DNA of 64,000 nt from Ramazzottius varieornatus (taxonomy: Eukaryota > Animalia > Tardigrada): positions 5,865,591 to 5,929,590 of the forward strand of contig BDGG01000001.1 of the NCBI GenBank assembly GCA_001949185.1. The letters are read 5' to 3'. Within the stretch, counting starts at the first letter, position 1. Each line of letters opens with the position of its first letter. Positions 6,539 to 31,658 of this stretch are shown here, piece after piece. The notes under the pieces are model-generated. The model searched no databases. It was not told the DNA's origin and saw only the letters and a list, made by a program, of their open reading frames with translations. The position numbers and the translations under genes were made by a program.

Positions 6539-6644
6539 GTGCTGGCGTTCGGCTCGCCCAGCTTGTTTTCCCAGCTTGTACTGAGATCGACAGGACGATG
6601 GAAAGGTACATTATTATTTGACCGTTTATTAAGACATCCGGGTA

Positions 6645-10176: not shown

Positions 10177-10197
10177 ATGGTCGACCAAACACAATAA

Positions 10198-10626: not shown

Positions 10627-10871
10627 TTAATGTCGTCAGCAGCTCGTGAAAATCTGCTAAGTTCTCTTCCTAAAAGTAAACGATAAAAAGATTCAAAAAG
10701 CTTCGGAATGTAGTCGAGCTGCAACGGCTGTGCCGAATACTTGCGCTTCTTGGCAATGGAGAGAATGCCAGAGGTAAGCCAGCTACGACTTGCCAGTACT
10801 GTTAGCCGACCAATCAAAACCCGACGGCGGTTCGTTCCTTCAAAGTGCAAGCTTCGCACGTAGCTTCGTAG

Positions 10872-11040
10872 TAGAGCACGGACTCTGGCCGCATGCGCTG
10901 CACTGCACTGCAGCTGTGCTGTGCTGCAGCACAGCAGCAGCGCGTGAACTGACGAAATTTGTGCGGCACAGCATACAGCGCCCTGGTAATGTGCGCAGCA
11001 CAGTTGCAGCGTACTTTTGGACCTGCGGCCCAGTGCTCTA
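10872..11040. mobile_element. hAT MITE, TGCAGC-rich
   Basis: TIR tagagcac / gtgctcta and a perfect 8-bp TSD cttcgtag (10864-10871, 11041-11048). Confidence 0.85.
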
Positions 11041-12525
11041 CTTCGTAGCAAGCTGAGGCAAGCTGCATCCCTCGCAACTTCTGTTCGGAACAGCGACGGA
11101 TATCAAACCTATCGGACGGGGGATGAAAAACGTATCGATGGCTGGATAATTCTCCCGGATGAATTCCAATTCAAAATATGTTCCACTACGCCAGCGAGAA
11201 CGTTTTACGCCGGATACAGCGTTGTGGTTTGGATATGGAACTCCGATGGCATAATCACTGTAATCTGGGGTTAAACTCTTGGTGTAGTTTTGCACTTTAA
11301 TATGTGGCTCTCGAAATAATGGATAATTTCGCAGTTGCAAATATGGTTTCCCGGAGAGCCTAAAAGAGCACACAACGATAAATCCCGAAACGAGATATCC
11401 AGAGCGGTGTTATTTTACTATGCAACTAAAATTATCAAAAGTCGCGTGCTAATGTTAGATATTTTGTCATGTGTACAAAGGGTGGTGTTGTTGGAAAAAT
11501 TTTGCATACGTGTTTCAAAACGTATGTATGATTAGAGTACGGATTTTAGAAAGGGGGTTCTTGGTCCTAATTCTGACTTTGACGATTTTGGCCTCAGGTT
11601 GTAGAGAAAACTTAGTGTTGACGAATGCCACCAACTGTCACGAAATGACATGACTAGTTTTGGAGAAATCAATTGTGGAAGTTTTTCTCAACCCGGAAAA
11701 TTTAATTTTCCCCCATAATTAATAATATTTAGAAAATCGCCAAGCCCGAGTTGTGTACTCTGCCTCGTAGTGCGAGATTAATCGTTGCACGCGAAGGCGG
11801 CTAGAGGTCGCGGGGGGGGGGCAAGTCAAGAAAAAACTACCGTAGAATTCCTCCTGAAAGGTCCACAATCCTTAATTTTCAAAAAGCCCGCAATCACGGA
11901 ATTGCGTTGGACTCCGGCCGTCACTGGTCACACCTGATGTCGTGCGTAGATTTTGCACAGAGACCCGAGTAGATTTACTCCTGGAAATACCCCGCCGTTT
12001 CTTGCATCTTCATACTGAAGAGCAGCACCATGTGTTACTATCGCAAAAACTGAGCTTTTTGCACTTCTCAGGGCTGCTTCTGAGGAATTCTGCATTATCC
12101 CTCACTGTGGCAGCGGACTGCTCGTGAAGCTTGAAAAAAGTCTTTTGCTTAAGCAAACCATGCTTTCTCAGTTCTCGATGGCAAGGCTACCGCGACAAAA
12201 ACCGGATCGGTGTTAGTGGCTAACGCACAGAAGTCTCTCATCTCAATATTTTTACAAGGAACGGAAACCGACTAGGTCGGCTTTGTTAACAGGTCTTGTC
12301 GCTTCACATCGTTCACCGAAAATAGAGTATTTATCCGTTGATCCCCTAGCTAGCAGCAGGTCAGCTTCTCCATCATGAAAAAGTGAAACGCATGATTACC
12401 TGCACACGCTGAGAGACTGTTGTCTTTTATCCTACAATGGTGCGTCTGTCCTTAACATCGATTGTTTGTCATGGGAATTTTCCGTTTTAAACTAGTCTGA
12501 TTTAGCTGTGCTTTGCATACCAGAT

Positions 12526-13704
12526 ATGTATTCTGTGAACGCAGTCTCTTCTAGTACCGCTCGATTCAACAGAATCACGAAACGTCCCAACCATCAGGCA
12601 TTGTACTTTGTTCTGATTATCACTGTTTTGCTACCGACTTTTCAGGTGATGTTGTCTACAACCGTCACCGACAGGTACGAAGGTACCACAGCGACGGAAA
12701 AACCCAGAACAAAAGTGTTTTATTTGAAAATGTTTAGAGCTGCTAGTAGTACCATACAGAATGTATTCTTTCGTTACGGAGATGCCCGGAACCTTACGTT
12801 TGTTTTACCAAGAGAAGGACATATGCTTGGTTACCCTCGGCCATTTGAACCGTCATTTGCCCTTCCTTTGCCCTCAGCGTTTTCCCGTCAGTATGATATG
12901 TTTGTTAACCACGCTCGTTGGAACGAACGAAGTCTAAATATCCTTTTCCCAAACGGTGTCATCAGCATAACCTCCATACGAAATCCAGTCGGCATGATCC
13001 CGTCTCTATACGACTATTTCGGCATGCGGAGTCGATACAGCATACCCCTCAGCAAGTTCATGGAAAATCCCAGTCTGTACACGAGAAGGAAGAAGATGAA
13101 CTGGTTTACACGCAACCCAATGGCGGTAGAGTTCTCAATTCCGAGTAACGTCTGCGAGAACGGCACGCTGTTCACCCGGCGGCTGATGCAGATAAACGAT
13201 ACGTTTGCTCTGGTTATGCTAGCAGAACGTTTGGAGGAGTCAATGGTATTGTTGCGTGAAATATTCAGGTGGAGCTGGAATGATGTCGTTTTCTTTCGGA
13301 CCAATGAGCGATGCGACTGCAGTCCGAGAACGTTGGTGGATGAATCCCTGAGTAGAAGAATCCAAAAATGGAACGCTGTGGACCTCGCGCTGTACAAGTA
13401 TTTTGAGATGGAATTCGAACGAAAAAAGCGTGTTTACGGCCTTACTAAGTTCAGGACGGACGTGGATTTTCTCAAAAGACTAAACCATCAATGGTACAAG
13501 CATTGCGTTATCGGGACAGACATTGCCCCAAGATGTCGTTGCGGTTCAAACGGCACCATCTCTAGCAGTGATTCGGAAGCTCTTCTTTACAGCCGAACTG
13601 TAAGGAAAGATGATTTAAACTGCCAGAAGCTTGGCCTACACGAGATGCATTACACGCAAATCCTCAGAAAAAAATTATGGCCCAACTTGACACGAACTGA
13701 ATAA
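12526..13704 (+). CDS. Galactose-3-O-sulfotransferase-like type II membrane protein
   Basis: Single ORF with an N-terminal TM (ALYFVLIITVLL). Family motifs: VFYLKMFRAASSTIQNVFFRYG..LTFVLP, NHARWN, ITSIRNP..SLYDYF, FALVMLAERLEESMVLL, WNAVDLALYKYF. First in-frame ATG is at 12526. Confidence 0.88.
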   Translation: MYSVNAVSSSTARFNRITKRPNHQALYFVLIITVLLPTFQVMLSTTVTDRYEGTTATEKPRTKVFYLKMFRAASSTIQNVFFRYGDARNLTFVLPREGHMLGYPRPFEPSFALPLPSAFSRQYDMFVNHARWNERSLNILFPNGVISITSIRNPVGMIPSLYDYFGMRSRYSIPLSKFMENPSLYTRRKKMNWFTRNPMAVEFSIPSNVCENGTLFTRRLMQINDTFALVMLAERLEESMVLLREIFRWSWNDVVFFRTNERCDCSPRTLVDESLSRRIQKWNAVDLALYKYFEMEFERKKRVYGLTKFRTDVDFLKRLNHQWYKHCVIGTDIAPRCRCGSNGTISSSDSEALLYSRTVRKDDLNCQKLGLHEMHYTQILRKKLWPNLTRTE

Positions 13705-13977
13705 ATGTTTCATGTGGTGTACAGCAGAAAAGCATGTCGTTCCGGCGGACAGTCCATCAAAAACGTGAGAACTCGACAAACTATCGTTTCAAGATAGACG
13801 TGATGGCCAGGGAAGAACAGAAGAATCGCATTTTTCGTTATATGCCGATTTCTGGCTCGAGGCAGGTCAGTCGCTGGCTTTCTTTACCCATCGAGGTGCG
13901 CTTTTCGGAATGTGAATACACGCTTGCCTCAATACAGCGGGCTATAGGGAGCCAGGCTAGAGCGGGTTAGTCAAGAG

Positions 13978-14158
13978 CAGAGCCTGGCTGAGGTAGGCCG
14001 CGCCCAGGTTTTTTCGACGTCACCCTAATAAAAAATTTTCACTTGATTGATAATTTTGATTGAGCGCGTCGGTATATCATTACGATCGGTGAATCGATCT
14101 GAACGAAGTCTTGCTGACGTCGAAAAACATGGGCGCAGCCTAGCTCGGCCAGGCTCTG
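13978..14158. mobile_element. hAT MITE
   Basis: Long TIR cagagcctggctgaggtaggccgcgccca... / ...gggcgcagcctagctcggccaggctctg and a perfect 8-bp TSD gtcaagag. Confidence 0.88.
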
Positions 14159-15737
14159 GTCAAGAGTCACGCCTGTAGCCGTCATACTTGTTACCTTGTT
14201 GGCCTCCAACAATTACAAGGTAACAGGGTTTCCGCATCTGACTGACACCAGGGCTAGACGGTCAGCGATGCGGAATAATTTTTGTGGCATGGCATGTGCT
14301 TACACCATCATTTTACGCTTCAAAAAGTTTTTAGTCTCACCAGAAGTGGTTCCAGCAATCCTTTCTCGTTGGAAAAGAGGTCTCTAGCACCCTCTAACAA
14401 GTTCAGCAGTCACCAACAAGTTAAAAAGAAATTTTTAAACCTTCACCGGGGCCCGTCGGCCTGTCAAACTTGTTAGCGGAGCCTGTGAGAACTGCTGGAA
14501 AACTCCTTTGCGATCAGATTCCTCGGACTTGCTACCGAAACATTCCGTCTTACCACTGTAGTCTTACGAAGCCGTTTTACTTTTAAAAGCGTGGGAAACC
14601 GTGCAAGCGCGTTAACCGGCCTTACCCATTTTCCTACAGTACAATTGGAATTGTCGCTGATCTTCGTACCGCGATGCATCACAGCGCAACAAACTTCCGG
14701 TTGGGAAAACAGCTGATTATAGCATATTTCTGTCAAAACTGTATCTATGAAGAGCGAGAAAAGCTCTGAGGCTGATTGCTGTTCCCTTCAATTTTCCTAG
14801 GATGAGGTAAAATGCAGTCAACGCTATCCGTCCGGTTTCAAATTTTGACTGTACGTTGTATCCGCAGTACTGCACTGGCAGTGTGATAATCTAGTGATCA
14901 CTAACTAATCACCGCTTGAAACCGGACGAATGGCGTTGCCCGCATTATATGCGCATCAAGGTGAAGATTTACGTAAAAATTTCATGGTGCGGTAACAAGT
15001 TTGGAGGTGTCGGCAATAAGTTTGAATGGTCCGGTTCCGGTATCCAGTTGCGGCTTATCGATAACAAGTTGGAGGTAACCCGTAACAGCTTAGTGGAGGC
15101 GGTAATGAAAACTCCAACCTCCAACAAGGCAACAAGTATGCTGGCTGCAGACGCCACTAGTTTTCAAGACTACTGCTACTCGAGTCGAAAGGGTTGATCA
15201 ACCTAGTATGAATTTCCAGAATGTTTATACTATTCCGCACAAAACAGCCCATCGGCCTCCCATTGTGTCTCGCGGATTTAGTCATTCCTTATGCTGGCAT
15301 CCGTAAATGTGTGATTGCAAAAATCTGAATTTTTTACAAGTGTAAGCATATATACTGAATAACCTCGTGAGGACGCGTGGTAGAATACGTCTTGCGGACT
15401 CGGAACGTTTGGTATCGAAATGTTATGACACTGTATCTTCAGTATAACGAAAAAAGACAAGATTAGCTTGCTCACGCACTTCAATTGCTGCACCTCGATG
15501 CGGGTACGCCAAATTCTGAGGTAATTGTGACAAAAGCTCGTCCAGAGTTAGTTAGCAGATTGTATCGACCAAACATTGCAGAAAGAATGTACGCTCTACA
15601 CTGCCAAGCGTCCTCACCCACGACTTAGAATGGAGGTGAATTACTGTACGTAGATATTTCCTGTAATGCATAAATGCTGGATGGTAAGGCTTTTACTGAG
15701 GGCGACCAGATGAAAAGCACGGACTGATTTCAGCGGA

Positions 15738-17824
15738 TTAAGTACACTGGAAAACGGATGTCCCAGAAGCTCCGTTTCTTTGAAATGGATCACCCATTTC
15801 CCAGTGTCTTTTAGCGGTTCGATACCAGTCAACTGTTTGATCCAGGCCAGTGTCGAAATCTACTTTGGAGGTCCACCCCAGAGCGCGAATTTTCGAGGAG
15901 TCGACCGAGTAACGGCAGTCGTTATGTGGTCTGTCGGTCACGTACTCGATATACTGTGCAGGGTCGTCACTTCCATGAACCTTGGTGACGAGGAGTCGGC
16001 ACAATTGTATGATTTGAATTTCGTCATCCGTGCCGATGTTATAGACCTCTCCAATCACTCCTTTCTCTACAACGGTCTGTAGAGCTGTACAGTAATCTTC
16101 GACGTGCAGAAACCTTCTTGACATCAGACCAGCCCCATGCACTGGTAACTTCTGATCGCTCAACAGGCAAGTGACAAATTTCGGGATTACCTGAGTTGGA
16201 AACTGGTATTTCCCATAGACGTTGTTGGCCCTAGTGATGACATAGGGCAAACCGAACGACTTTCCGTACGACATTAGCAAACATTCAGCACCTGCTTTCG
16301 TGGCGGCGTATGGGTTGGTCGGGAAAAACGGAGTATTATGCTCCGCACAGCTACCCGTTGGCACTTCACCATAAACTTCGTCAGTGGAAATGTGGACGAA
16401 GAGCTGGAAATTCTCGCGGTAAATCTTTATGGTTTCCAACAGGTTGAACATTCCGATAATGTTGTTTTCGATGTAGGTCAACGGATGACCAAAAGACGGG
16501 TCCACAGTACTGGCGGCTGCGAAGTGGATGACATGGGTGATGTGATTTTGTTCGAAGGTCCGCCTTAGTTCCCGTTCATCCAGGAGATCGGCGTGAATAA
16601 ACTTGTAGTTTGGGTCTTGTGGGTTTTCAATATTACGTAGGTTGGAGTTGGTCAGTAGCGCGTCAAAATTGATCACGATGTCTTTTCGATGGCCAGTCAG
16701 CCAGTAGTTGATGAAACTACTACCTATAAAACCAGCGCCTCCGGTTACCAACAGGACCCTTTCAGGGTTATTCGCAGAGCTAAAAAACGAGATGCGTTAG
16801 TGGCGTGGAATAAGGAGTTAAACAAATGTGGAATGTGAGTCGCTGTAATGCAGGACAGGCTACATATCGCATACCGGTTTTGTGCAGGTGGCGGATACAT
16901 CATGTCAATGACCGGATTTCTGAAGCGCAAAGCGAGAATTTCCATGATTCGCTCGTTGATAGGTTTTAATACAGCAGGAACAGAATATCGATTTTTCGTT
17001 TCTTGAATCAATTCGTTCATCATAACAATGGCCTTGTCCGCAGTCAATAAGTTGTTTGAGCGCTTCGCGACGACAAGGTCAGACTGCTCAGATGGAGGAA
17101 CAAGTATGTAGTTTAGCTTTGTCTTCGCTGAACTTTCGTATTGCTTAAGAACAGTATCATGATCGATGGACCCAGGATTGACCGCATTGATCGTTCCTGT
17201 CTTCATGTGAACCAACAGAGCGATAAGAAACGGGATCCAGTCCGACAAAATTGTCATTGAGTTCTTGACGGATATGATTTTCTTGTAACCTACAATCTTT
17301 GTGATGAAGTCTCGAGGGTTGGACTGTACCGAGATAGGCATTCGAACACGAGCGTTCAGCACGTGAGGAAACCCTTTCATCAGTAGATCGGTCTGACCTT
17401 TTACAATGGAATACGACGATCCAAAGAAGTTTGCATTCTCGTCCTCCCGAAACCCGTGTCCTCCAACAGTATGGGTAGCATCGTACTCGAAGATGCAGCC
17501 GGAGCCAATATATAGCAGGGGAATACTCCTTCCATGCAGGCCGGAAGTAGCGAGTGCGACCAGAACTGGAGCAGTCAAATTTGATCCCACATTATCGGTC
17601 AGTTTTCCTGGCTGCTCCAGGTAGTCAACAGTATTGTTGAGGGGACCAGAAGTGCGTCCAAGTGCACAGACCACTCTATCCGGATTCCATTTTTCCACAT
17701 CTGCAATGACGTCCTGGACAAATCTAACCCTTCCGCCGGGGTACGCTTTGTCTCCGGCGGATTTCACAGCTTCGCAGAACTGCTGACCGATCCACCCCGA
17801 ATGACCGTAAATCAAAAACTTCAT
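15738..17824 (-). CDS. Fused NDP-L-rhamnose synthase: N-terminal 3,5-epimerase/4-reductase (NRS/ER-like) plus C-terminal NDP-glucose 4,6-dehydratase; exons 17824-16875 and 16779-15738 (663 aa)
   Basis: Domain 1: MKFLIYGHSGWIG, NFFGSSYSIVK, RVRMPIS, NPRDFITKI, NSMTIL. Domain 2: LVTGGAGFIGS, HFAA, HISTDEVYG, PTNPYAATKA, ITRANNVYG, DRPHND. A 95-nt intron at 16874-16780 (GTATGC...CTAAC...TTTTTTAG) joins the two ORFs in frame (QN-R-SANNPERVLLVTGG). Confidence 0.9.
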
Positions 17825-18996
17825 TATCAGCACCTAAACACACTTTTCAACGGCAAACCCACATCAAGTCAACTACCAGACGGTTGCAGAACCCAGAGCT
17901 TTTGGAAGCATGAGACAGTCTGCCTGGTGGCAAGATTCACAGTGTGAGCATCCGTCCTTAAGTGGCAGGAACCGTCTGTACTGTTTTCCGTCGAGCAACT
18001 GATCAGTTCAGTGAAGCAACTGATTCATGAACACTAGGACCTGTACATGTAGTCCAGTCTGTACGGCTAGTTCCGGTGAACTCACTGTGAAGAACGTGGC
18101 TACCACGGTTGAGCAAGCCGCTCTTGAATTTTTTGTGTACTGGTCGCCGAACTAGAGCACATACGATCAAAGTACGCTCAGAGCTTGGACAATGAACCTT
18201 ACCAGCCCCCTCGGTGTCGGAGGTCAAATAGTTCACTGTCGCGCTGCCGGTACGGCTTGCGCAATTTCATTCCATCCAAAAGTCAATTAGGTGTTGTGAG
18301 ACAAAGTGACTCAGGTGCAACCACAGTCATGGCTGAGAACATTTGCAACCATCAGCTTCCAGGCGCGTTTCTTGTCCTGTGAAAGCATACGTTAATACGG
18401 CAACAATGCGTTCTGCTGAGCTGCATACAAAAAGTATTTATTGGTAGACTGGGTCGAGACGAGTTTCTTCCGGACCAATCACATCTTCAACATCAAATTC
18501 AACTCCCTTTCATGAGTACCGTTGATTCACGAAATGCTCGCCACTAAACAGAAAAGACCGACCGCTTATCAGGCTTTGACCAGCACCGGGTGGTTCTGTT
18601 TCTTTTTAAACCATACATTACAGTTGATGACACGTTGATGACGCGAAGACCTCAGGGACTTCGTCCGAAAATGTTTTCTGTAAGGATGGTGAATAGTTCA
18701 ACCTGTTGAGAGCGCATTTTCACTGCACCATTAGCAATTCGTTCTATTAAGCCCAAGTTTTAGATCGATTTACCTCTCTGTCCATATGACATGGTACAGA
18801 GAAAATCAGTTAAACAGATACATCTCGATACAGTTCATCAGAGCATACGATCCCGAAGGCCATACACACAATAGGGTAGTGGCATCAAGCAGTGTACTGC
18901 AGCACGACGGGCTCCATGGCCTTTCATGGGCAACTGCTGATCGATGGTACGCAACAGCTGCGTTTGCTTTCGGGCCGTCTAAGTCCGACAATCACA

Positions 18997-19983
18997 ATGA
19001 ACCGACGGCCTCTCCACTTTTTACAGCTGCTAGCGCTGTTGATTATAGCTGCCATGGTTATTCAGCGGGAATGGATCTCTGATGTTCAAGTGTGGCTCCG
19101 TAAAACCACTGGCACACGAAACGATTTGTCTCCACTTATCCCAATCATGAAATCCTTTCGCGACCTGGCGGACCAATTCACAATTCTGCCAACAGAGTTT
19201 TGTGGCTCTTCAGTTTTCATGATTATCGGCGTCATATCTAATCCATCAAACTTTGATGCGCGCAGCGCAATCCGGTCCACTTGGGGTTCCTTCGCACTTA
19301 CTTCATCGTGTGTCAAGTTAATATTCGTCTTGGGAAAAGTTCGAAATGGTACTCTCCAAGAAAAAGTGGGAAAAGAGTCAGCTCTGCATGGCGATATTTT
19401 ACAGTCTAACCAGTTTTACGACGCTTATCGGGCTTCCCAGATAAAAACAACATATCTGCTACGATGGTGTGCTAAATTCTGTGCGAACAGCAGTTTTACT
19501 GTACGGGTTGACGATGACGTGTGGGTAAACTTACCGAAGTTTTACAAGTACATGAAAACTCGTTCAGCGTTCAGCAGCCGGGATGCATATGGATTCAAAC
19601 TTTCGGGAAGCAACATGACGATCGTTCGACAACCGGAAAGCAAATACTATGTACCTCGGGAAGACTTCAGTCCAGATTACTATCGGGATTTTTTGGCAGG
19701 AAATCTGATCGCATTCCCCACAAGTTCACTGCTTAGTTTATTGTCTGTGTCTGTCGCAAACCCTTCGGCCATGTTTCTCGATGACATTTATTTCACTGGT
19801 CAACTTTCGATGCATGTAAACATGTCGTTGACGAATATCCCGGGATTTTTTCCAAGATTTACTCAAATGGTGGGACGCACTTGCTCTAAAAAGACCATGT
19901 TGTGGATGCACTACACTTCACCTAACGATATGTACATCTTGAGAAGTAATCGCTGTTGGACATCTAACACCACATTTTGTTGA
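18997..19983 (+). CDS. Beta-1,3-galactosyltransferase family (GT31), intronless
   Basis: TM segment LQLLALLIIAAMVI; motifs RSAIRSTWG, IFVLG, ESALHGDILQ, FYDAY...KT, RVDDDVWVN, SKYYVP, LDDIYFTG. Confidence 0.9.
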   Translation: MNRRPLHFLQLLALLIIAAMVIQREWISDVQVWLRKTTGTRNDLSPLIPIMKSFRDLADQFTILPTEFCGSSVFMIIGVISNPSNFDARSAIRSTWGSFALTSSCVKLIFVLGKVRNGTLQEKVGKESALHGDILQSNQFYDAYRASQIKTTYLLRWCAKFCANSSFTVRVDDDVWVNLPKFYKYMKTRSAFSSRDAYGFKLSGSNMTIVRQPESKYYVPREDFSPDYYRDFLAGNLIAFPTSSLLSLLSVSVANPSAMFLDDIYFTGQLSMHVNMSLTNIPGFFPRFTQMVGRTCSKKTMLWMHYTSPNDMYILRSNRCWTSNTTFC

Positions 19984-21149
19984 CCTCAGATTTGTGGCCT
20001 TTTGAGCCCCAGTACAGTTTACGCCGGAGCCAGTCGTAAAATATATGCGCCAGATCATGGCGGTCGATTGTCGTGGCCAAGTCGCGTACGTCGGGTCTAC
20101 TACAGTACTGTACGACAAACCCTGCAAACTTTGGTGTATCAGACAAGGATATGATTATAGGAAAAATTCGGAGCTACGTGCGCCAAGTTGAATTTTGCCG
20201 CACCTAATCCGCCGGTAACTTACACTGCATTTTGCGATAGGATCAACGGGTGAGAGTACCGCAAGATCAATCAAAACCGTGGACTCGCTGCCAAATGTCG
20301 GCTTACCTTATACTTTCTGGATATGCAAGGAGGAAACAAGTGCGCCGACGAAATACGCATGTAAATGTACCGTAAATCGCATCCCCTGATGCCACAAGCC
20401 TTTTGCACATTAGAATGAAATGATGTTTCTGCTGCAAAACCTCCTCCAACTATCGGCTTCCCACTGATGCTGAGGGTTTTGACTGGTATACCCGATGGGT
20501 AAGATGTCGCACCAGCACACACCATGAAAGACCAGACGGTTCTTTGATTAACCCCGACAGAGAGGTGGAGCCGAACTTGAAATCGTTTTTGGTTTGCTTG
20601 TCTCTGAATGCATACTACCATTCGCGAAATTCGTTTTCGAAGTTTCAGTTTTGTCCGTCATTTTGTTTATCCCTACGACTTCATCTCGTGAATCACCTTT
20701 TCATCGTGGTCATTTTGGTTCTGCAACGTCTGGGAAGGAGTGTAAGTACCGGAGGAAGGAAGGAGGCGACAATTTAAGGAGCTAGCTTTTCATGGCTGAT
20801 ACAATCGTTGCCAGCTGCTCGGATAGCCTGACGAAGGTTGCGCGAATTTTGAAGGCACTGACTGTGTGTAAACTTTTTTGGTCACGAAGAATGGGTTTAG
20901 AAGCTTGTACGTGTTTCACTTTCAGTTGGTACTTTAAAGTGCCAATGAAGTGGGACAAGATTGGTCCGGGTCCGCGTAAAGAATCCCCCCAGTACGCGCC
21001 GTGTTGGCTGTTATGTGTCATGTCATAGCGATCAGCTGATCGATACACACGTTGACCAGATATTTCACCCACCATCCGCTCGGTCTTTTTGCACGCACCC
21101 GGACCCAAACCTGTCCCGCATTATTGGCTCTTTAAAGTACAAGGTAAAC

Positions 21150-21530
21150 GACATAATGCGGGCATATCGATTTTCGCACCATAATTCAGGCAACGCGAAA
21201 GGTTTGAACATTACCTTCAACGCTTGATACATCCCTCCTCCTACGTGTGTTGATTCTACATTAGGCTTTTTAACATTGGACACACCCATCTCTATCCCAG
21301 GCCAAATTCCCGTGATCTACAACGCTTTCCCGTTCTCAAACCTATTGGAACTTCGAGGAGAGGGATCAGTCTACCTCATGAAACAAGAAGCGATTCATTA
21401 CGCGCAGCAGGAGCTGAGAAAAAATATGCCCGAATTACGAGTGAAAAACCCCTATGCCCGAATTATGTCGTTTACCTCGTATTCGGGAGTCGAGAATGTG
21501 CGTTACATCAGCGATATCGTTCAGTCACCA
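21150..21530. repeat. Dispersed repeat, inverted copy of ~30680-31035
   Basis: Shared segments such as ttttcgcaccataattc(a/g)ggca, ttcccgttctcaaacct and atgcccgaattatgtc occur in opposite orientation at the two loci. Boundaries are approximate. Confidence 0.6.
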
Positions 21531-22713
21531 TCAAACAATCAAGTGGGTGTTTCCTCGTATGTTTTTTTGTAGTCTAGAAAAAGTTAAACAGCTAGCATTG
21601 CAGCGTGCTACACCTGCTCCTTTGTTTCAGATCTTACCTGAGCAGATCTGTTTCTCCCTTTTCGACGACCAGATCGCCTCAAGTTCGAGCAGTCTGCATA
21701 TCATCATCGATCGTTTTCTCTGTCTTTGTGCTCTTGTTTCCTTCGGCGATTACGCTTCGTTGGCTGTCTTTCCTGCGTCAACTTGTTATCACGTCGCCAT
21801 GTCTAAACTAGGAGGAGTTGTGCACGCGCTTGGTATAAGTGCAGCCAATGACTTGTCCGTGCACACGTTGAGTCATTAAATCGAGCCGTAACTCATACAG
21901 CCCGTACCACTCATGTGTCCCTCGGTCGAATCGCGCACCCTGTCGGCTCACAGATCCTCTTATTGCGCCACTGTACCGTCACTCACTACCGATTGCACCG
22001 AGAAGGCTTGAGCAGTATCCAAACATCCACGCATTAACCTGCTTAGGTCCTCCCGATTTAATCTGACATTGCTGTGAGGAGATGGTTTTAATTACGGAAA
22101 GGATTACGGGTGTTATAAGTACTCAATGATCTCTCCCTTTCGAGCTTGATGAAGAATATTCAGGTTCCGCCCGGAATAGGCTGCCCTAACGTCAAGAAGA
22201 GACGATAGCACAGACGGTCCGGAGTGGATGCTCAGCTGAAAACAGCCGTGCTGTGGTAAACCGTAACTGGCAATCGCACGAAAAGACACGTAAACCTGTT
22301 CCGTTCCCAGTGATAACAAGGCATTTCAGAAGAGCAATGACGGTAATCAGAACAGAATCGAAGAGGAACTGTTCTACTGGACAAAAATCTCGTTGAAAAA
22401 TATAAAATCTCCGAAAAGCGGTACATGTTTACCGAAAATCAATCAAGTTCTTTGTGTTGGGACTTCAATCAGCCGGAAACTATGTGCCAACAGGATTTAC
22501 TCGACTCGGACGATGAGTGCAAGCATGGCTCGGCTGTGAGTTAAGCGAGAGCGTGTCAGGAGGTTTTACTGGCCAATGCGGCAAACCCCGCGACTTCGTG
22601 TTGCGCAAATCCCACCTGTACTCTCCTCCGTTTTAGTCATGGACTTATCACGTTTGTGTACTCTGTCATCGTTCGAAGTGTAAGGAGCAATGGAACCGAA
22701 AACAATAAAAATA

Positions 22714-25100
22714 CACGTGGCTGGTCTAATGATTGGCATGGACAAAAGCATTGGCAAGTCATTTCCGAGACAGCGGCTCCGCCGGCTGTATTCGCTTACA
22801 GTTGAAACAAACTGGCTTTCACCATACGTTGCCCCTTTACATCCCGCTCGGATAACCGAATCTTTCACAGAGAACTTCCCAATCATTTTAAAACCCAATC
22901 TTTCCGTACACTTGGCTTTCCATTTATTTGAGGTAGGAAAACACTATCATTCAGTGAGCTCAAGGCTACGTCACAATCTCAGTTTTTGGCCTTCTTCGAC
23001 GTGCCTTTCTTTGGAGCGACGGGTAAATCTGCTTTAGCAGACTGAGATCGCGTTCTTTTCTTGACGGCCACTGGCAAGTCGATTTGGGCAGTCTTAGGTC
23101 TCCCGCGTTTCTTAAGCACTTCATCGGTTGTTTCCGAAGGTTTGGCTTTCTTTGACACCTTTAAAGCTAGCCGTGCGCGATTTCGTTCCTCGACTGCCTC
23201 CACGTACTCGCTATCAAGAACGTTTCGGCCTTTGTCGAGAGCGAGTCTTTGATCCTTCGGTTTTCTTTGTTTCTTTGGTTTGGAGAATGAGAAAGCCTTA
23301 CTTGCTGCGGCTACTACCGTCTCCGTAGCTGTCTTATGGCCGGCGTAGATGCTCACGATGGACTCGATGCTTGCATGGATCTTGTCATCGTCCCTGCCAA
23401 CCCTCGAGCGAAGAATATCGGCCACGTCTTTCATTGGCGAGCTCTCTTCAGTCAGTATTGGTGATACAGGTGCATCTTGGGCCACTAACCTCTTAACCAC
23501 AGTTCCACGAATCGTTTCAGGTGAGAAGGGGAATATTCCGGTATTCCTGAAGCCGCTCTTCAGGGACACTTCAAAATCGAATGAAAATGCTGAAGCTTGT
23601 GGTGTGCAAAGCAAAGCCAGGTGCCTAGCAAAAGTGTTGCGAGTCATCTAGAAGCAAAAGGGGTTTTATAAAAGCATGCTCCGGACAGAACTTCAGCGAA
23701 TGTAACTTGCCTCGAAAGATCAAGACGTCTGGAAGCCTTGTAGTTCTTCCACTTCTCTTTCATGCATCCAAACGCACAGTTGTCCAACGGCTGTAACTTA
23801 TCCGTTTGTCCCGCAGGTAAACAAATAAGCTTGATATCCTTCCCGGAGTCCCTGCATAACTTGAACAGCTGAGCATTGTTGACGTGGCTGTAATGTCCAT
23901 CGAAACGAACGATGCACTACGAAAAAATAAAGGCTTAGTCCATTGCCCGTGAAGTACCCTGGATCAGAAAGAGACATTTCACGCACTATCAAGTAACAGA
24001 TTTTGTTCATACAAAGAGCACAATACCTTCTGTGGCGCGTTCGGCAAAATAACTTTGCGGAAGTATTCTGTCATGATTTCGGGATCCATGACTGCGATGT
24101 ACAGTTTGCCTTCGGTGTTATCAAACATGCTTTGCAGATGCATAACTCCATCGAAAAGGACCAAGGGCCTGTACATCTTTCCGGTAGCATCACCGCAAAA
24201 CAAAGTACTGACTGCGTCCCGCGTAGTTCCGTCGGTGTACGAAGGGAAATGTTTCATTCCTCTTGCTGCGTAAACTTTCTCCTTTTCAAAACCCAGGATA
24301 AAACCCGACTCGTCCAGGTTTATTACAGCCGACGGATCCGAGAGGTATCCTTCGCTCTCAAGGCAACTCAACAGGTTAATCCAATTTTGAGCACATTCGA
24401 CAGTCCATTCCCGTGCCTTCTTGCGATCCACATTAGATCCCATGCGAAGAGAAATCTGCTTCCCATGGTCACGCAGGAAACGACGATGCCACTTCTCGCT
24501 GAAGACCGTACCCATGCCTGCCAAAAAAACACAGAACTGATGTTACTTAATTTTTTTCAAAAACAAAAACATACCTTTTCCAAAGCCCATCTCATCGACG
24601 AAAGTACGCAGATTATGCTTATTCATGGGGAATCCATTGTTCCCAAAGCCAATCAACATGTCCACCAGTCGAGCCTCCTCTGTCGGGTCCAGCTTTGTCT
24701 TTCGGCCAAGCTGCTGAGCTATGGGGGATTTCTTGTAGTTGATGATCGTTCCTCGCGGCACACAAAACGTAAGCGAAGCTTTCCGAACTGGCATCCCGTT
24801 CGCCACTGCGCGAACTGCATCTTGCAGACATTCCTCGGTGTACTTCCGGCGTCTCTTGATCTTGAAACCTTCCGACATGTTTCAAGGTTAGGTTATTCAA
24901 GAATCGAGATCGGGAAACCAACTTATGAAGAAATACAAAATTTGAAATGACATTGTACAATGAAAAGCGCATTGCTAAATTTTCACTTCCTGACGTCACA
25001 AGGCTACTTTCTGTCCCGATATAACATTCTTTGCGTTAAACTGCCGCCAGTCCGTGCTGCCAATGCTTTTGTCCATGCCAATCATTAGGCCAGCCACGTG
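22714..25100 (-). mobile_element. pogo-family (DDE_1) DNA transposon, near full-length copy B
   Basis: 43-bp TIRs (22714-22756 / 25058-25100, 1 mismatch) and TA TSD. The spliced transposase has an HTH_psq-like N-terminus (YTEECLQDAVRAVANGMPVRKAS..VPRGTI), a CENP-B-type HTH and catalytic motifs NLDESG, FDGHYSH and LQPLD. Confidence 0.93.
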
Positions 25101-25679
25101 TACCTTTTTGGGTTTTATCAGGGTTTCTGTCCCGGTAAAAACCATGAAACTCTTTTCAGCCCCGGGGTGCCCAAATCCCGTGAAATCGCAAGCAATCTCG
25201 TAGAACAGAAATGTTTTACATAGCAAATCCTGTTGGTGAAAAATCTTGCGCCACCCAGATCCCGGCTGACTATAATCTCTGACCTACTCTTGCACTTGAA
25301 TTGCTTTATGCGATCCCTGATGCCACGGCCACAAGTAACCCAAATAACGACATGAAAACGACCGGTTTTACAGTGGGATATATAAGTTTATGGGACATGA
25401 AAAAGTTATTTACTATTAATAACGATAGTTTATCCCGGAAATAATGAATCGCGGGATTTTGGAATCCGTCATTTCTTCACGATTGAGCTTCCAGTTTGCC
25501 GTCCTTTCCGCCTGTCCCATTGTCTGTCGTCGTCCGTGTACGAGGAAAACCTTACTCAGTATAGACGTAATGAAATAAAATTTCCGCATTGAGCTTCGCG
25601 AATGATGAAATGACCGCAACGATTTGCCAAGTTCATGTTCCCTGTTAGCTTGCAGATATGTTTTACATACGACTATTCT

Positions 25680-25817
25680 AAATATTGGCTGCATCCGCGC
25701 ATAGCGTCATTGTACACGTGAATTACAGCCCTGGACCGGTTTCACGGATTGCGCAACCCCCTACTGGGGTGTATCGTCGCGTATGTATACGTACTGCGCG
25801 GATGCAGCGAATATTTC
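25680..25817. mobile_element. MITE, same family as 43502-43646
   Basis: Inverted termini aaatattggctgcatccgcgca / tgcgcggatgcagcgaatattt; shared core tttcacggattgcgcaac. Confidence 0.7.
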
Positions 25818-26191
25818 AAGTGTGCACAGGAAACTTGTGACGCAAATGTTGTAACAGATACCTGGTGAAACAATTACTTAGGCCTGGCCTCACATTTCTG
25901 CCGGTACAAACGAAGAGCATATGTATGTGAAGCTTACACTTACAAGAACTAGAAAGGATCAGAAGCACCTCACCCTCACTTGGTCCCGGTTCGTTTTTGC
26001 AATCAGGCCTGGTATTTCTAACAAGGTTTTGACCTGCAAAAGTATCCCTTGCTAGGAGTACATTCGATTGTAGAAAGTTATAACAGTATCAGAATTCGGC
26101 TATGGCACATCTAGCCCTTCTCCGTGAGGACAGCTTGACAGATTACTCTCCTCGATACAGTTTCCCATAAAGAAATGGCTCTTGTGTGGGT

Positions 26192-27558
26192 TCAGTCCAA
26201 TCCTGTCCAATGAGGGAGGAAGTAATCATTTTCTCTGTAGTTTCGAGCTATCGCCGAGTGCGGTCTCGCCCAGTGATTGTAATAGACGACGTCCAGAGCA
26301 TCACCCTGATAGGCACCCCACCATCCAAGTGATCCCACAGACAGGATAAGGTGATCTGCAAGCATCAGCATTGCTAGCGTAACAACTGGATCCATGCTCT
26401 CCACGAACACGATATTGGCCACACCCTCGAAAGCTGTTCGGCACCAGGAAACATCATCACTGACAGCGAAAAGCATGGCGCCAGGATACATAGCACTCAT
26501 TCGAGCAATTGCACGCAAAAAATATCGTTTGTTCGTGGCAGAATAACCAGGCGATGCGAGACCCGGCTCAAGAGCCATCTTGCGGAAGACAGATATACCG
26601 ATGAGCACATCAACATCTTTCTTCGCTTCCAAACCAGCGAACAGTTTCTTGGCGGCTTGATCGTAGATGTCCTCTTTGAGTACAAACTGATAGTCGAGGA
26701 GAGGTTTATATTTGTGAAAGTACTTCCACGATTGAAAGGACCCTCGAAGAACCGATACTTTGGCGTGTTGCTTTGCTGTGCTGGCTACTGGACTGCGAAT
26801 GTCCATCCGACGACGGAGAGACTTGTCGAAAACACCCGGGGTGGAAACGATAAACACAGTTCTGTTAAGCAATCCTTGCCGGAAGCTTTGGCTATCTTGC
26901 TTTGACAGTAGCTGTGGTGAGTAAAACTCGTGCATGAAATTTTCCGAGTGCAAAATCGTTCCCGTGAAGACAGCTGGAAAATAGATAGATGTACGCTTAC
27001 GAATAACTGCTCACGCGATGTATTTGGTACCCCTTGGTTGCTCACCTTTTCGGGCACTGGCCTCCGCCATGCCGATAGTCGCAGCGGCAATAAAAAGGAA
27101 ATCACCTAGGTCCGCATTTGATGGTATCTCGCCGGTTACGAAGAAGGTGTCTAAATATTGTGTTTCTTCTTGAGCTCGTCCTGGCAGGGACAGCATCCAG
27201 TCCGACAAAACTGGTCGTGGTAGTGAAAGACGGCATTGCACACGTGCTCTTATACGCTGGGTCACGTCATACGCTACCGGGAGGTGTTTCCCACATGCTC
27301 GATACGCGGGTGCTCCTCGGCGCGTCTCTGCAAGTAACAGTTATGATACGGACGGGTTAGGTAAAATAACTACTCATGGCACCACTTCACGATGGTTTAT
27401 GTTTATGTACCCAGAACGGGCTCACCAGTGAACAGAGATCCTGTGAACTCGATCAAGGTAACAGAGGAGGACGACGACAAAATAAACAACAGAACGGCTG
27501 CGGTTGTAAACCCAACGGCGGTCAACCAGTATGTCGATGATGCTGATTTCCTATACAT
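26192..27558 (-). CDS. Alpha-1,2-fucosyltransferase-like (GT11); exons 27558-27411, 27327-27046, 26973-26192 (403 aa)
   Basis: N-terminal TM; ADLGDFLFIAAATIGMA (GRLGNQMF-like), LRGSFQSWKYF, YFLRAI, FAVSDDVSWC, DHLILSVGSLGWWGAY, DYFLPHW. Both GT-AG introns are phase 1 and keep the frame open. Confidence 0.85.
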
Positions 27559-27801
27559 CACTAGAACACTTTCATAAAGTTTCGAAAATGTTCCGTCCAG
27601 TGTAAATTTATAAAGCGTCAGATACCTTCCAAAATAACGAATCACGTTTAGAGAAGTCATGAATTGCAGCTTGAGCTGATTACTGCACCATTTCAAGTAG
27701 TGCTCACTTCGAGTTAGCAGTGTAACTTAACCTTCAGAGCACCTAACCTTGCGTGACGTACGGCAGAGGCTGACGAGGAGTTCGGGGAGATCAGGGATGT
27801 T

Positions 27802-29509
27802 TTAATCGAAATTGCATGAAAATGTTATTTCCCGGCTTTCCTTAATTGAGAGAGGAGATCCGTAGAGGATGAATCGGTAAATCTGACCCAGGAAGGTCGG
27901 ATTACTACGCATGGCCGTAAAACTCAGATTTAAAGCATCGGTTATTGTCATTACCCCAACTTCAACATCTCCTTGCAAAGGAAAAAGTCGTGCTTTATCC
28001 TGCAGCTCCTTTTGGGATAAATGCAACGTCTTCGGACTGAGGGCGTCTTCTAACCGTGAACTTGTAGGTTTCCTAATGTAGTACATGTCGGAAGTCATTA
28101 TTAAGCCTTGCATATTGTCTCGCTGCACCGCAGTGCTGGTCTCCGATGATTGCCTACAGAGGTAAAGCTGCGTTCCGGCGAATGACTGTGACAGGTGAAC
28201 GATCAAAGGTCCGGTCAATTCCGTGGTCGAGGGAGCATGGACGACTAGACGCTTCGGTGCAAGGTTCTTCAGAATCGAACGAAGTGAAATATATTCCGCG
28301 TTCGTGAGATCGTTGGGTTCGAACTGCGTTCTTTGTCGTTGCAGAATGTATTGCACCGACAGTCCGTCGACGGGCGGTTGAAATTGGCAGGAACTTGCAA
28401 GCTGGAGTATTGGTAGGCCAGGATTCACAATATCTCGAAACATCTGTGCAAACGATGAGTCTCTATTGAACAGCTCCGAATACGACAGTTCATGGGTCTC
28501 ATCTGGAACCAAAAGTCTGGTGTTCATCGTTTGTTCGATAGAATAGGCTTACAGTTCGCAGAGCAGAAGCATATGGTTTGCACTTACAGTCGTCGTCGTT
28601 ATGGACGTAGAAATGCCGCTTCCAGTTGTTCACATGCGCATGACGGAACTTGGCCCCTTCGTCTCCATAGTAGGTGTACATTCCTTTGTCGGCAAAGTGG
28701 ATAGTCTTCCGGTACGTTGCGTTCGCCCCGTATAGCCTCATGGGAAACACACAAGCGTTATACATGGCAGCGATTGGGTTCTTTCCACAGTAACCTCTAA
28801 AGTTGACTTCGTATTCATGCAGCCATTCTCTGACGAAGTCGGTGTTGGGCCGGCAAGCGAATCCTCCACTGCTGATGAAGGTTTGACCCTTCCAGAAGGT
28901 TTTCCCGAAGATACAGTCATAACGTTTTAGCCACTGTACAAGCTGAGACCGCTGACCAACAAAGTAGATATCGAAGTCAGCAAGGAACCCACCGTAATCT
29001 TTCGCTGCTTTCAGCTTGAATAGGTCCGCTTCCTGTTCTATCGTGATGAGCCTCCTGCCATTAGCCCAAAGAATTCGTTTGATCGGTATGACTTTGATGT
29101 GATTTTTCACGGCGTTCCAATAAGGCCCGGCGAACTCAGCATTCGTGTGTAGATAAATTGTTACCGGATGAAGGCGTTTCACAGCGGACACAATCGAAGC
29201 GTACTGGAGTACCTTGAGGTCGTAAGGAACTGCGCTTACCCGGTTCTCTAGCCACACGTAATGTACCAAGATATCTTCAGGTCTCTCAGACTCTTCCCGT
29301 ACCCATTGTTTAGCGCTCCTCACGCGAACTAAATAGCACACGATGCAGCCCACAGCCAAGACTACCACGAGACTGGGTCTGTATTTTAACAAAGAACAGG
29401 CCAGCCTATGGCGTCGACCACGCAGGAGCAATTGGTGTTTCCTGTGGTCTCCGCGTCCTGTGCGGGAATTTCTACTTTCGGGGAATACAGTCATTGTCTC
29501 GCTGGGCAT
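27802..29509 (-). CDS. GT32-like (alpha-1,4-glycosyltransferase, DXD) with ~200-aa C-terminal extension; exons 29509-28588 and 28502-27802
   Basis: TM segment LVVVLAVGCIVCYLV; motifs ILVHYVW, ASIVSA, EADLFKL...YGGFLADFDIY, FVREWLHEY. An 85-nt intron (GTAAGT...TTCCAG, 28587-28503) joins in frame to ETHELS..SSFAQMFRDIV. The 3' end could include further splicing. Confidence 0.8.
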
Positions 29510-29571
29510 CTAGTGAGATTCGACATCTCAGGGCCTCGATTTCAAAGTGTTTCTGGTCAGCGCAGTATTAC

Positions 29572-30232
29572 GCTCTGTTTCATCTACCGATGGGTGGTAC
29601 TTTCAGCCTCCTGGCCAACCCATCCGAAATTTTTTATGGATTCTTTTAAGGCCATAGTTCTTAGTTCGCGAAGCGGGTCAACTTGGCCGTTTTAGAAAGT
29701 TAAGATCAGTTCTTGATCATCCCGCTACGGGGGAAGATCTACTGATAGGATCTCTGATCCTCAGTATGTACGATCCTCCACACAGTCGTACGCGTGAATC
29801 CGTCCCGGGTAGTGAGCACGCGGCAGACCGGCCAATCAACGGTCAGCTGTCAATCAGTCCAGCATGAATGTGCAGTATCACACACGGTGAGCCCAGCGTG
29901 CCGTTGATCACCTGTTTATGTACTCAAGGCGCAAATCTGTNNNNNNNNNNNNNNNNNNNNNNNNNNNNNNNNNNNNNNNNNNNNNNNNNNCCTACCCGGG
30001 ACGGATTCACACGTACGACTGTGTGGACGATCGTACATACTGAGGTTCAGAGATCCTATCAGTAGATCTTCTCCCGTAGCGGGATGATCAAGAACTGATC
30101 TTAACTTTCTAAAACGGCCAAGTTGACCCGCTTTGCGAACTAAGTACTATGGCCGTAAAAGGATCCATAAAAAATTGTGGATGGGTTGGCCAGGAGGCTA
30201 AAAGCACCACCCATCGGTAGATGAAACAGAGC
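29572..30232. mobile_element. Long-TIR foldback element spanning an N gap
   Basis: Arms of ~240 bp (29572-29812 and 29991-30232) are near-identical reverse complements with scattered mismatches. Confidence 0.65.
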
Positions 30233-31048
30233 TTAGCTTCAGACAGGCTACGTTTGTAACTTTCCAGTGGACGTAATTGAACAGGCTTACTCATGCACTT
30301 GGCAAATAACAAAATGGCATTGTCTACATGCACGAACTGTACGCGATCAGGCGTATCAGTATCCATCAGTGATTTCGGTTACGTGACTGCTGAGCGGAAC
30401 TTTGTCGCAGGTGTAGCATGATAAGCAGTAGTCACTGACTCCGTCTGACCTGTTGGTTGCGTCAATGGAACCTTCAAATAGAACTCACCGAGAACAGCTA
30501 AGGGTTAAAACGCCAACCACTTACGAACAAGACCGGATGACCGGAAGCGGTTTCGATCTAGTAAACTTTGAACCGTCATCTGTCGTCACGAATGCAGACA
30601 ACTCCCGACACATCCGCGCCATCTGTGTCGAAACTCGAGGCCAGACGCGAGGCGCTTTTGCGCAGCTTAGCTGGTTGCAAATATCGCTGACAAATTCTGC
30701 AGTACGAGGTACAGGACATAATTCGGGCACAGCGGTTTTCGCACCATAATTCGGGCATATTTTCCCTCAGTTCCTGTGGCACGTAATCACAAGCGTTTGT
30801 TTCTGGAGGTACATTGGTCTATCTACTCAAGGTCTCAACAGGTTTGAGAACGGGAAAATGTTGTAGGTCAGGGCAATCTATCGTGGGAGACACATGGGTC
30901 TGTCCAATGTTAAAAAACCTAAAGTTGTACCAACAGACGTATGATGAGGTATCAATCAAGCCTTGATCACGATGCTTAAACTTTTCGCGTTGCCCGACTT
31001 GTGATGCGAGAATCGCTATGCCCGAATTATGTCCTGCACACGCATGAC

Positions 31049-31658
31049 GAGATATTACGGGCCAGTAAAAATTATGGGCTACTAAAAATTATGAGCCAGT
31101 AGAAATTACGGGCTGGGCCCTTTCGCTGCGGCGGTACGGGCAGGTGATTCTTGCTGCAATTAAAAACCAGCATCGAAGGCTGTACTGCTGTACGTACGTG
31201 CTGGACATTGGGCCGAGGAGCAAAAACATGTCATATTAATATTTATTGTGTGGTATCTTCGACATAACGTAGAACGGTGCTGCGCGGAAGTTTGAAGACT
31301 GGAGCTGCTTCGCATAGTGCCATTCCATTCCCGACACCAGATAGAGCATCCTTCAGGGCTTCTTCGGTGCATCGTCGATACCGTTTAATCTTGAAGGGCT
31401 GGGACATTTTCAAAAACGCTCACGGAAAGGATATCGGGACAAGGAGTCCAGAGCTTCTCCGAGAGAAGGTTGAATGTCTATGCACAGTGAAACAGCTGAT
31501 CAGCTGACGGCCACTGTCCATGACAATTTTCTACGGTTGAATTTACAGCGTTCGTCATTTGTCCGATTTCTGTTTCTGACTTCCATACATATTGTAAATT
31601 TGCCGTCTTTTCCGCCTGGCCCGTAATTTTTTACTGGCCCGTAATATCTCGTCGTGCA
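31049..31658. mobile_element. MITE of a family also seen near 25490, 32670 and 47340
   Basis: TIR (g)acgagatattacgggccagtaaaa / ttttactggcccgtaatatctcgtc; shared internal cagctgatc(a/g)gctga and tttgccgtc(t/c)tttccgcct motifs. Confidence 0.6.

Follow-up and report, generated by a model that had tools for sequence, protein, structure and literature searches.

A cluster of glycan-enzyme genes from five families around the rhamnose synthase gene of the tardigrade Ramazzottius varieornatus

Five genes for glycan enzymes, drawn from five unrelated families, lie together within 17 kb of the genome of the tardigrade Ramazzottius varieornatus. They occupy positions 12526-29509 of a stretch of 64,000 nucleotides (hereafter the window; C1:5865591-5929590 in the 55.8-Mb, 200-contig assembly that was searched) and encode, from left to right, a Gal3ST-like sulfotransferase, a rhamnose synthase, a GT31 transferase, a GT11-fold protein and a GT32-like protein. 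An earlier note on this DNA had proposed the grouping, and Pfam, structure-database and RNA evidence now places every one of the five genes where that note had put it. Repeats alone separate them; five non-homologous enzyme genes thus stand side by side, where a biosynthetic gene cluster calls for at least three.

A multi-family glycogene cluster in this animal genome is real and unusual. Bacteria and giant viruses routinely cluster unrelated genes that serve one pathway, and plants and fungi offer examples too, but such clusters are rare in animals, and we know of no animal gene cluster for glycan assembly. Rhamnose itself, to our knowledge, hardly features in animal glycobiology outside the one case that has been studied, the nematodes. 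We interpret the locus as a genuine cluster of secretory-pathway glycan genes around the sole intact NDP-L-rhamnose synthase that would be kept together by joint use, and put the probability of this reading at about 50%. Judging by the clustering statistics, the recurrence of family pairs and the analogy with other systems, it is plausible that the cluster is co-regulated and serves a shared pathway.

Genes and products of the cluster

The Gal3ST-like gene (12526-13704, +) is a single coding exon for 392 amino acids (aa), with a type II membrane anchor at aa 25-43. It matches PF06990 with an E-value of 7e-50 (170.5 bits; cut-off 27). The residues of its motifs for 3'-phosphoadenosine 5'-phosphosulfate (PAPS), namely K68, S74, S75, R152 and S160, are invariant together with H129 in an alignment with animal homologues, and its closest relatives are animal Gal3STs at 27-31% identity. 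The public gene model spans 12994-13701 alone. A six-frame search finds two Gal3ST loci and one fragment genome-wide; the other Gal3ST lies 3.6 kb from an exon of a GH38 alpha-mannosidase (L007:47-1144 (-), equal to C3:3703047-3704144).

The rhamnose synthase gene follows on the minus strand. Exon 1 (16875-17824; 316 aa), which has no Pfam match, contains the 3,5-epimerase/4-reductase domain and aligns with the Mimivirus UDP-L-rhamnose synthase 7JID (1.6e-61) and the Arabidopsis 3,5-epimerase/4-reductase 4QQR (1.8e-46). Exon 2 (15738-16779) encodes an NDP-glucose 4,6-dehydratase domain (PF16363, E = 2e-67; 6BI4, 6e-76; Mimivirus 6VLO, 6e-70). A 95-nt intron at the domain junction (16780-16874, GTATGC..TTTTAG), predicted by reading the sequence and by frame arithmetic, joins the exons in frame into a protein of 663 aa. 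The epimerase/reductase domain comes first and the dehydratase second, which is the reverse of plant RHM. GxxGxxG, TDE and YxxxK motifs are readable in the translations; with NAD(P) and catalytic motifs in both domains, the fused product has the sequence hallmarks of an NDP-L-rhamnose synthase of the UGD + UGER type. It is the single intact dehydratase copy in the genome (six-frame search, E<=1e-5). Among named proteins, the closest to the synthase comes from Paramacrobiotus (45% identity); environmental proteins without a name come next at 44-46%, and the score of a plant RHM is far lower.

The synthase (-) and GT31 (+) genes stand head to head across a divergent intergenic region of ~1.1 kb (17825-18915), and this orientation makes a shared promoter possible. 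GT31, a member of the beta-1,3-glycosyltransferase family, is encoded in a single exon (18916-19983, +; alternative ATG at 18997) and matches PF01762 (E = 7e-27; 95 bits against a cut-off of 23). It carries the DxD motif within VRVDDDVWV and a type II anchor, LHFLQLLALLIIAAMVIQ, and is one of ~19 GT31 loci in the genome (six-frame search). To its right lies a transposon block (21132-25103) that consists of a miniature inverted-repeat transposable element (MITE; 21132-21485), an ~830-bp repeat (21793-22625) and a 2.4-kb DNA transposon with terminal inverted repeats (TIR; 22712-25103). The elements of the block occur in dozens of genomic copies at 82-97% identity. The TIR transposon has 45-bp inverted ends and full or partial copies, 96-98% identical, on contigs C14, C2 and C11. 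Between the genes, as proposed, lie only transposons and other repeats.

The GT11-fold gene (26192-27558, -) encodes 398 aa with a type II anchor in three exons (27558-27426, 27327-27046 and 26973-26192). Its introns, 27328-27425 and 26974-27045, appear as CT..AC joints on the plus strand in RNA contigs of three sequencing runs (X1, X3 and X7), and the frames fit. The earlier assignment to GT11 stands as regards the family, since PF01531 is matched well over its cut-off (E = 3.5e-16; 59.7 bits against 23.9; match in 26192-26953), but the donor motif of the family is gone: SVFRKM stands where HxRRxD belongs (codons ~264-270, window 26500-26620). HxRRxD is the donor-binding motif common to alpha-1,2-, alpha-1,6- and O-fucosyltransferases. 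About 15 GT11 loci are found genome-wide by six-frame search, and 14 copies were aligned; 13 of the 13 other paralogues in the alignment carry H[VI]RR[GST]D, the fragmentary C7:921k copy showing HVRR before the alignment ends. Because the GDP-fucose motif is absent, we class the protein as GT11-fold and not as a fucosyltransferase. From the sequence, the loss would mean either decay or a new donor. The motif-less gene is still expressed and spliced, and its reading frame is open.

The GT32-like gene (27802-29509, -; public identifier RvY_02101) encodes 540 aa with a type II anchor in two exons (29509-28588 and 28502-27802). An 85-nt intron (28503-28587), present in RNA contigs of X1 and X7, joins open reading frames (ORFs) of 336 and 241 aa in frame. 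Its GT32 identity had been claimed outright. PF04488 alone misses its cut-off (13 bits against 23, E = 0.17), and Pfam as the sole basis for the assignment was accordingly replaced by other evidence. Language-model features group the protein with PF04488 clusters (score 0.95, 200 shared features), and several of its 28 genomic paralogues reach PF04488, for example C9:420825 and C1:6125390. The total of GT32-like loci is ~28-29. The DxD motif, D178-F-D180, is invariant. An AlphaFold model built from six sequences (pLDDT 67) gives Foldseek matches that are all retaining GT-A enzymes, with a probability of 1.00 and a TM score of ~0.4. Sequence and model together point to a PF04488-related family of predicted retaining GT-A enzymes.

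The C-terminal 232 aa of the GT32-like protein (window 27805-28500) match no family; a weak internal repeat of residues 77-124 from the catalytic domain (E = 6e-5) points to a second, degenerate GT-A domain here. A PDB sequence search with this part returned no match, and a ConA/laminin-G identity (0.85, few shared features) was dropped in favour of the internal repeat. The public model RvY_02101 (545 aa; window 27014-29494 (-)) is a chimera of two genes: its residues 1-314 and 315-440 derive from the GT32-like gene, and residues 441-545 from exon 2 of the GT11-fold gene read into its intron. As the RNA contigs back two separate ORFs, the public annotation is hereby corrected. The two genes are co-oriented, and their spacer (27559-27801, -), crossed by an RNA contig, measures exactly the 243 bp that had been read from the sequence.

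Hydrophobic N-terminal segments are present in four of the five proteins (Gal3ST, GT31, GT11 and GT32-like), in agreement with the four type II anchors proposed earlier; the synthase has none. The genes had also been described as intron-poor next to the intron-rich WASHC5. The first part holds, with 0-2 coding introns per cluster gene, but WASHC5 lies 29 kb away and is no direct neighbour. Golgi transferase families of animals are in general typically intron-poor, so that intron poverty is no special mark of the cluster.

Clustering beyond chance and its recurrence in the genome

We asked how often such a neighbourhood would arise at random. In 20,000 random placements of 71 loci from seven families, five families never fell within 17 kb; the maximum was four, reached once. 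Under a gene-order model, between 5e-7 and 3e-4 runs of five glycogenes in a row are to be expected per genome, the upper figure assuming 400 glycogenes among 13,900 genes. With the measured family sizes taken into account, as the earlier note had asked, the clustering is far beyond chance. The same note had conceded that families might be so expanded that five neighbours are to be expected; with ~19, ~15 and ~28-29 copies counted for GT31, GT11 and GT32-like, this is not the case. A pure chance neighbourhood of expanded-family members has these copy numbers in its favour, as well as the fact that the category 'glycan enzyme' was chosen after the genes had been seen and that very many windows were scanned. 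The margin remains large all the same, the two rarest families sit in the cluster itself, and further members of rare families lie just upstream. We therefore consider chance alone extremely improbable.

The cluster is the dense end of a glycan-enzyme neighbourhood of ~54 kb. An HtrL_YibB-like gene with a signal anchor (RvY_02086, C1:5841286-5842284) lies upstream, and the span from it to the GT32-like gene (RvY_02086 to RvY_02101) covers 54 kb and 16 gene identifiers, seven of them glycan enzymes. Between HtrL-like gene and window, ~13-15 kb before the window start, lies a decayed second copy of the rhamnose synthase (C1:5850308-5852377; L004:4718-6787, +) with the same epimerase-then-dehydratase order; its pieces are 45% identical, the frame is shifted in places and segments are absent. 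Only 1.9 kb past it stands an intact, anchored methyltransferase gene of the FkbM/Methyltransf_22 type (C1:5854234-5855256). Methyltransf_22 has two copies genome-wide, and there are three intact HtrL-like genes. The 50 kb upstream (L001-L005) add an alpha-L-fucosidase and the Gal3ST fragment, and a weak match to NXPE4_C lies further upstream. A 1.5-kb run of N (L005:8513-10000) directly precedes the window.

Pairs of the same families recur at other loci. Of the three intact HtrL-like genes, two have a GT32-like paralogue within 4 kb, at a distance of 0.6 kb on C5 (C5:2046786-2048881) and of 3.4 kb on C4 (C4:407152-411845); both pairs are divergent and may represent one duplicated unit. The remaining HtrL-like gene, that on C1, is separated from the GT32-like gene of the cluster by 52 kb. 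On C9, three genes fall within 7.5 kb (L006, C9:414001-424000): a Sulfotransfer_3 gene, a canonical GT11 and a GT32-like paralogue. The C9 GT11 (32% identical to that of the cluster) and GT32-like (30%) genes are 1.3 kb apart, and the Sulfotransfer_3 gene, one of three such loci in the genome, is ~5 kb from them. Since the Sulfotransfer_3 family also takes in tyrosine sulfotransferases, the C9 member may act on either glycans or tyrosine. A distance of 31 kb separates the second Methyltransf_22 gene from a GT32-like paralogue that is one of the two closest. Outside the focal region there are three inter-family pairs within 5 kb, a number that random placement equals in 0.24% of trials (P = 0.0024). 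The paralogous loci on C3, C4 and C5 were considered as full second clusters and yielded pairs alone.

Viral counterparts, known systems and origin

An alignment search with the epimerase/reductase domain of the synthase returns 311 relatives in IMG/VR, mostly in giant-virus bins, and three in 185,579 bacterial and archaeal genomes. Among 83 loci (80 from IMG/VR and three from bacterial or archaeal metagenome-assembled genomes), the epimerase-then-dehydratase order occurs in adjacent or fused form in 24 and the reverse order in 26. Fused synthase ORFs of 620-630 aa stand in dense, intron-free contigs. Some synthase loci combine the synthase with families of the tardigrade neighbourhood. On a giant-virus-like metagenome contig (L067; JGI20158J14315_10000247, 520-18672), a 2,524-aa ORF with GT31, GT11, FkbM, GT10 and pyrophosphatase domains lies directly upstream of a synthase of the fused dehydratase-epimerase form; the same locus holds a PHO4 transporter, a nucleotide-sugar transporter and a 1,722-aa ORF with GT2, MGAT2, LicD and GH38 domains. 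ORFs bearing FkbM/Methyltransf_22 adjoin the synthase at two further loci (L069 and L071, the latter in IMG/VR), and at L066 a fused synthase has, 3 kb away, an HtrL_YibB gene that shares 34% identity with its tardigrade counterpart. Fusions of HtrL domains with GT11 or GT2 also occur in environmental proteins. Glycan genes cluster in giant viruses anyway, which limits the weight of the four loci that share families with the tardigrade cluster. By analogy, the viral co-occurrence supports a functional link between the families, not a common descent of the cluster.

These relationships raise the question of whether the synthase and some of its neighbours entered together, as an island, from a glycosylation locus of a giant virus or protist and later gained introns and promoters. 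The epimerase/reductase exon is indeed nearer to Mimivirus L780 than to the Arabidopsis enzyme, most relatives of the synthase domain are viral by the counts above, and the domain order and fused ORFs are shared with viral loci. The HtrL-like gene, too, is nearer to environmental GT2-HtrL proteins (38-42%) than to the other tardigrade copies (35-37%), and Yoshida et al. 2017 list its orthogroup as a candidate for horizontal gene transfer in a supplementary table. This orthogroup entry is the only place where RvY identifiers of the cluster occur within the first 200 supplementary files to that paper. On the other hand, the Gal3ST relatives are animal proteins. GT31, GT11 and GT32-like each come from a family with many copies in the genome, and their similarity to the viral domains (28% or no match) does not exceed that to their paralogues (32-39%). 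The Paramacrobiotus homologue at 45% points to a long history of the synthase in tardigrades. The ORFs scanned around the cluster contained no viral hallmark domain. In a tblastn search of the cluster proteins against 163 viral and metagenomic synthase loci, four loci had relatives of HtrL, Methyltransf_22 or GT11, and Gal3ST, GT31 and GT32-like gave no match. Transfer en bloc from giant viruses was rejected on this result. Eukaryotic sampling is too poor for a donor to be named; viral rhamnose enzymes have themselves been called eukaryote-like (PMC4691112). We regard the acquired island as very unlikely. The synthase and the HtrL-like gene are, from their sequence relationships, probably of non-metazoan origin, and the assembly of the whole cluster seems to have taken place within the tardigrade lineage.

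Among known systems, giant-virus glycosylation clusters resemble the locus in content. This group, with Mimivirus R141/L780, the chlorovirus A064R transferase-methyltransferase and the metagenome contig described above as examples, has the same synthase type, with 7JID as the closest solved relative, and brings GT31, GT11, FkbM/Methyltransf_22 and HtrL_YibB domains beside the synthase; fused or adjacent epimerase and dehydratase domains are common among them. Reviews describe viral rhamnose addition as coupled to methylation (PMC4691112). Whereas viral enzymes are parts of giant multi-domain ORFs, the tardigrade has separate genes with introns on an animal chromosome, at a similarity of 28-47% to the viral domains, and neither Gal3ST nor GT32-like was found in the viral synthase flanks searched. 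Bacterial O-antigen and capsule loci (rfb/rml) similarly place a 6-deoxyhexose donor synthase beside unrelated transferases and modifiers of the sulfo- and methyltransferase classes. However, the tardigrade genes have spliceosomal introns, mixed orientations, separate promoters and Golgi type II anchors, are spread out by transposons, lack Wzx/Wzy/Wzz or ABC export genes beside them, and include a synthase of the UGD/UGER (NRS/ER) type instead of RmlB/C/D.

Caenorhabditis elegans, with its rml pathway, is likewise an ecdysozoan that makes L-rhamnose. One study found its rml-3 to be foreign in origin and necessary both for an intact cuticle and for resistance to stress (PMC10473587). Nematodes use separate enzymes of bacterial type, whereas the tardigrade has one fused UGER-UGD protein, and the abstract of that study describes no clustering with transferases. 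Eukaryotic metabolic gene clusters of plants, fungi and a few animals resemble the locus in having at least three adjacent non-homologous enzyme genes that plausibly serve one pathway; here it is the gene positions that establish the cluster, its co-regulation and common product being putative. The vertebrate FUT1/FUT2 and FUT3/5/6 clusters also place few-exon Golgi transferase genes side by side, but are tandem duplicates of one family, in contrast to the five unrelated families found here.

Transcription, strain divergence and the proposed pathway

Four RNA runs of R. varieornatus (X1, X3, X6 and X7) were aligned to window 25900-31800 (5,901 letters). Spliced contigs from three studies establish that GT11 and GT32-like are transcribed and spliced. 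One X7 contig of 2,858 nt crosses the GT32-like gene, the spacer and the GT11-fold gene; being an assembled contig it is no proof of a single molecule, and X1 has a 121-nt coverage gap. AATAAA is not present in the 243-nt spacer. Of the sampled words of 12500-22400, 51% are contained in X1, which is approximately the share of three coding regions with untranslated ends and fits, without proving it, the transcription of Gal3ST, synthase and GT31. In every RNA run, the summed contig depth is very high and loose ends are numerous at three short stretches of the window (29446-29642, 30037-30233 and 31022-31800), which probably represent expressed repeats or pieces of a multi-copy element with strong expression.

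X6 and X7, although labelled as the same organism, differ from the reference by 2-3% over window 25900-29625, which points to a different strain or a cryptic species. GT11 and GT32-like diverge by 1.9-2.8%, compared with 3.1% in flanking non-coding DNA. No indel falls in ~2.4 kb of coding sequence, whereas two fall in 0.5 kb of non-coding sequence. The two ORFs are kept open while the proteins change fast, a pattern that fits either a rapidly diversifying glycan system or a slow loss of function.

Such data bear on the main rival explanation, a birth-and-death hotspot: a transposon-rich stretch where intron-poor genes land, diverge and decay, leaving neighbours with neither pathway nor regulation in common. 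The gene relics argue for it (the decayed synthase copy and the Gal3ST fragment), and so do the young transposons inside the cluster, with copies 97% identical, the further repeats to its left and neighbouring histone variants, of which one copy is confirmed as a histone. The divergence of GT11 and GT32-like between strains at about the pace of the flanking non-coding DNA, the lost GT11 donor motif and the lack of returned close orthologues for Gal3ST and GT32-like are also what a hotspot would produce. It leaves unexplained, however, that almost every newcomer is a glycan enzyme and that the families differ, with a single-copy synthase and families of two to three copies among them, that the same family pairs stand at other loci of the genome, and that the same combinations occur beside rhamnose synthases in giant viruses. 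The absence of indels from the two ORFs between strains speaks against a hotspot as well. On balance, we find the hotspot somewhat unlikely, though the most serious of the alternatives.

Several observations nevertheless weigh against a cluster kept together by joint use. Three of its five families are expanded, and with its donor motif gone the GT11-fold protein could be inactive. Among the strain differences listed for the coding sequences of GT11 and GT32-like, 15 are non-synonymous and seven synonymous (66 further ones lie outside the list), a ratio that implies weak constraint on protein sequence. The RNA contigs give presence and not expression levels, so far as co-expression is concerned. 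The run of glycan genes is interrupted between the methyltransferase and Gal3ST, where ~23 kb are taken up by repeats, an N gap and ORFs that match no family. There is no nucleotide-sugar transporter near the cluster. In viruses and metagenomes, relatives of the cluster families (HtrL, Methyltransf_22 or GT11) occur in the flanks of only four of ~160 synthase loci. For Gal3ST and GT32-like, Hypsibius and Paramacrobiotus yielded no close orthologue, although the same search misses paralogues of 38-39% identity in the tardigrade's own genome, which makes the absence weak evidence. Local synteny between tardigrade genera is rare (PMC5531438), and conserved linkage would for that reason be telling. 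Finally, a term search of an N-glycome paper on R. varieornatus (PMC12167791) found terminal fucose and no mention of rhamnose or sulfate in the text searched; the product, if any, is more likely an O-glycan, a glycolipid or a matrix polysaccharide. A literature search found no paper linking tardigrades with rhamnose biosynthesis, and the RvY identifiers of the cluster occur in no searchable literature text.

If the genes are indeed kept together by joint use, the cytosolic synthase would make UDP- or dTDP-L-rhamnose, and the type II anchored enzymes would assemble a lineage-specific glycan in the Golgi. GT31 would add a beta-1,3-linked hexose or hexosamine and the GT32-like enzyme an alpha-linked sugar, Gal3ST would sulfate galactose, and the methyltransferase would O-methylate. 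The GT11-fold enzyme, having lost the GDP-fucose motif, might transfer another 6-deoxy-L-hexose such as rhamnose, or be inactive. Local duplication and relocation, in a region that is rich in transposons and evolves fast, probably brought the genes together, and shared use would then have retained them.

A bolder version would make the locus an animal gene cluster around a synthase of giant-virus or protist type, its product being a glycan that contains rhamnose and is sulfated and/or methylated, with the motif-less GT11 as the first animal L-rhamnosyltransferase and with GT32-like and GT11 expressed from one read-through transcript. Taken as a whole, we think this version unlikely. The value of the locus lies in the short list of genes that it provides for a candidate surface or matrix glycan in a stress-tolerant animal, with a sulfotransferase, a methyltransferase and candidate transferases joined to the only rhamnose synthase; with this list, an animal rhamnosyltransferase and a glycan O-methyltransferase can be sought in direct tests.

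The surroundings of the cluster are rich in repeats. To its left, relics of repeats and transposons extend over 6946-11272: window 6946-8899 is an older relative of the 2.4-kb TIR element (74%), and 8962-9716, a MITE at 10191-10633 and 10629-11272 are further repeats. ORFs at 8.4-11.4 kb were dismissed as host genes, as they lie within these repeats. Runs of N occupy window 5236-5285, 29941-29990 (430 bp upstream of the GT32-like start) and 46331-47128. A Pfam scan of ~45 further ORFs, covering 50 kb upstream and 30 kb downstream, gave mostly no match.

WASHC5 (strumpellin) occupies 58087-63439 (+) at the far end of the window, with at least 14 exons matched one by one by PF10266. Between it and the cluster lie the histone variants and an ORF with Crisp and CBM_14 domains (50495-51385, -). 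The Crisp domain of this ORF has an E-value of 1.5e-7 and its chitin-binding peritrophin-A domain is weak; the product is possibly a secreted cuticle or matrix protein.

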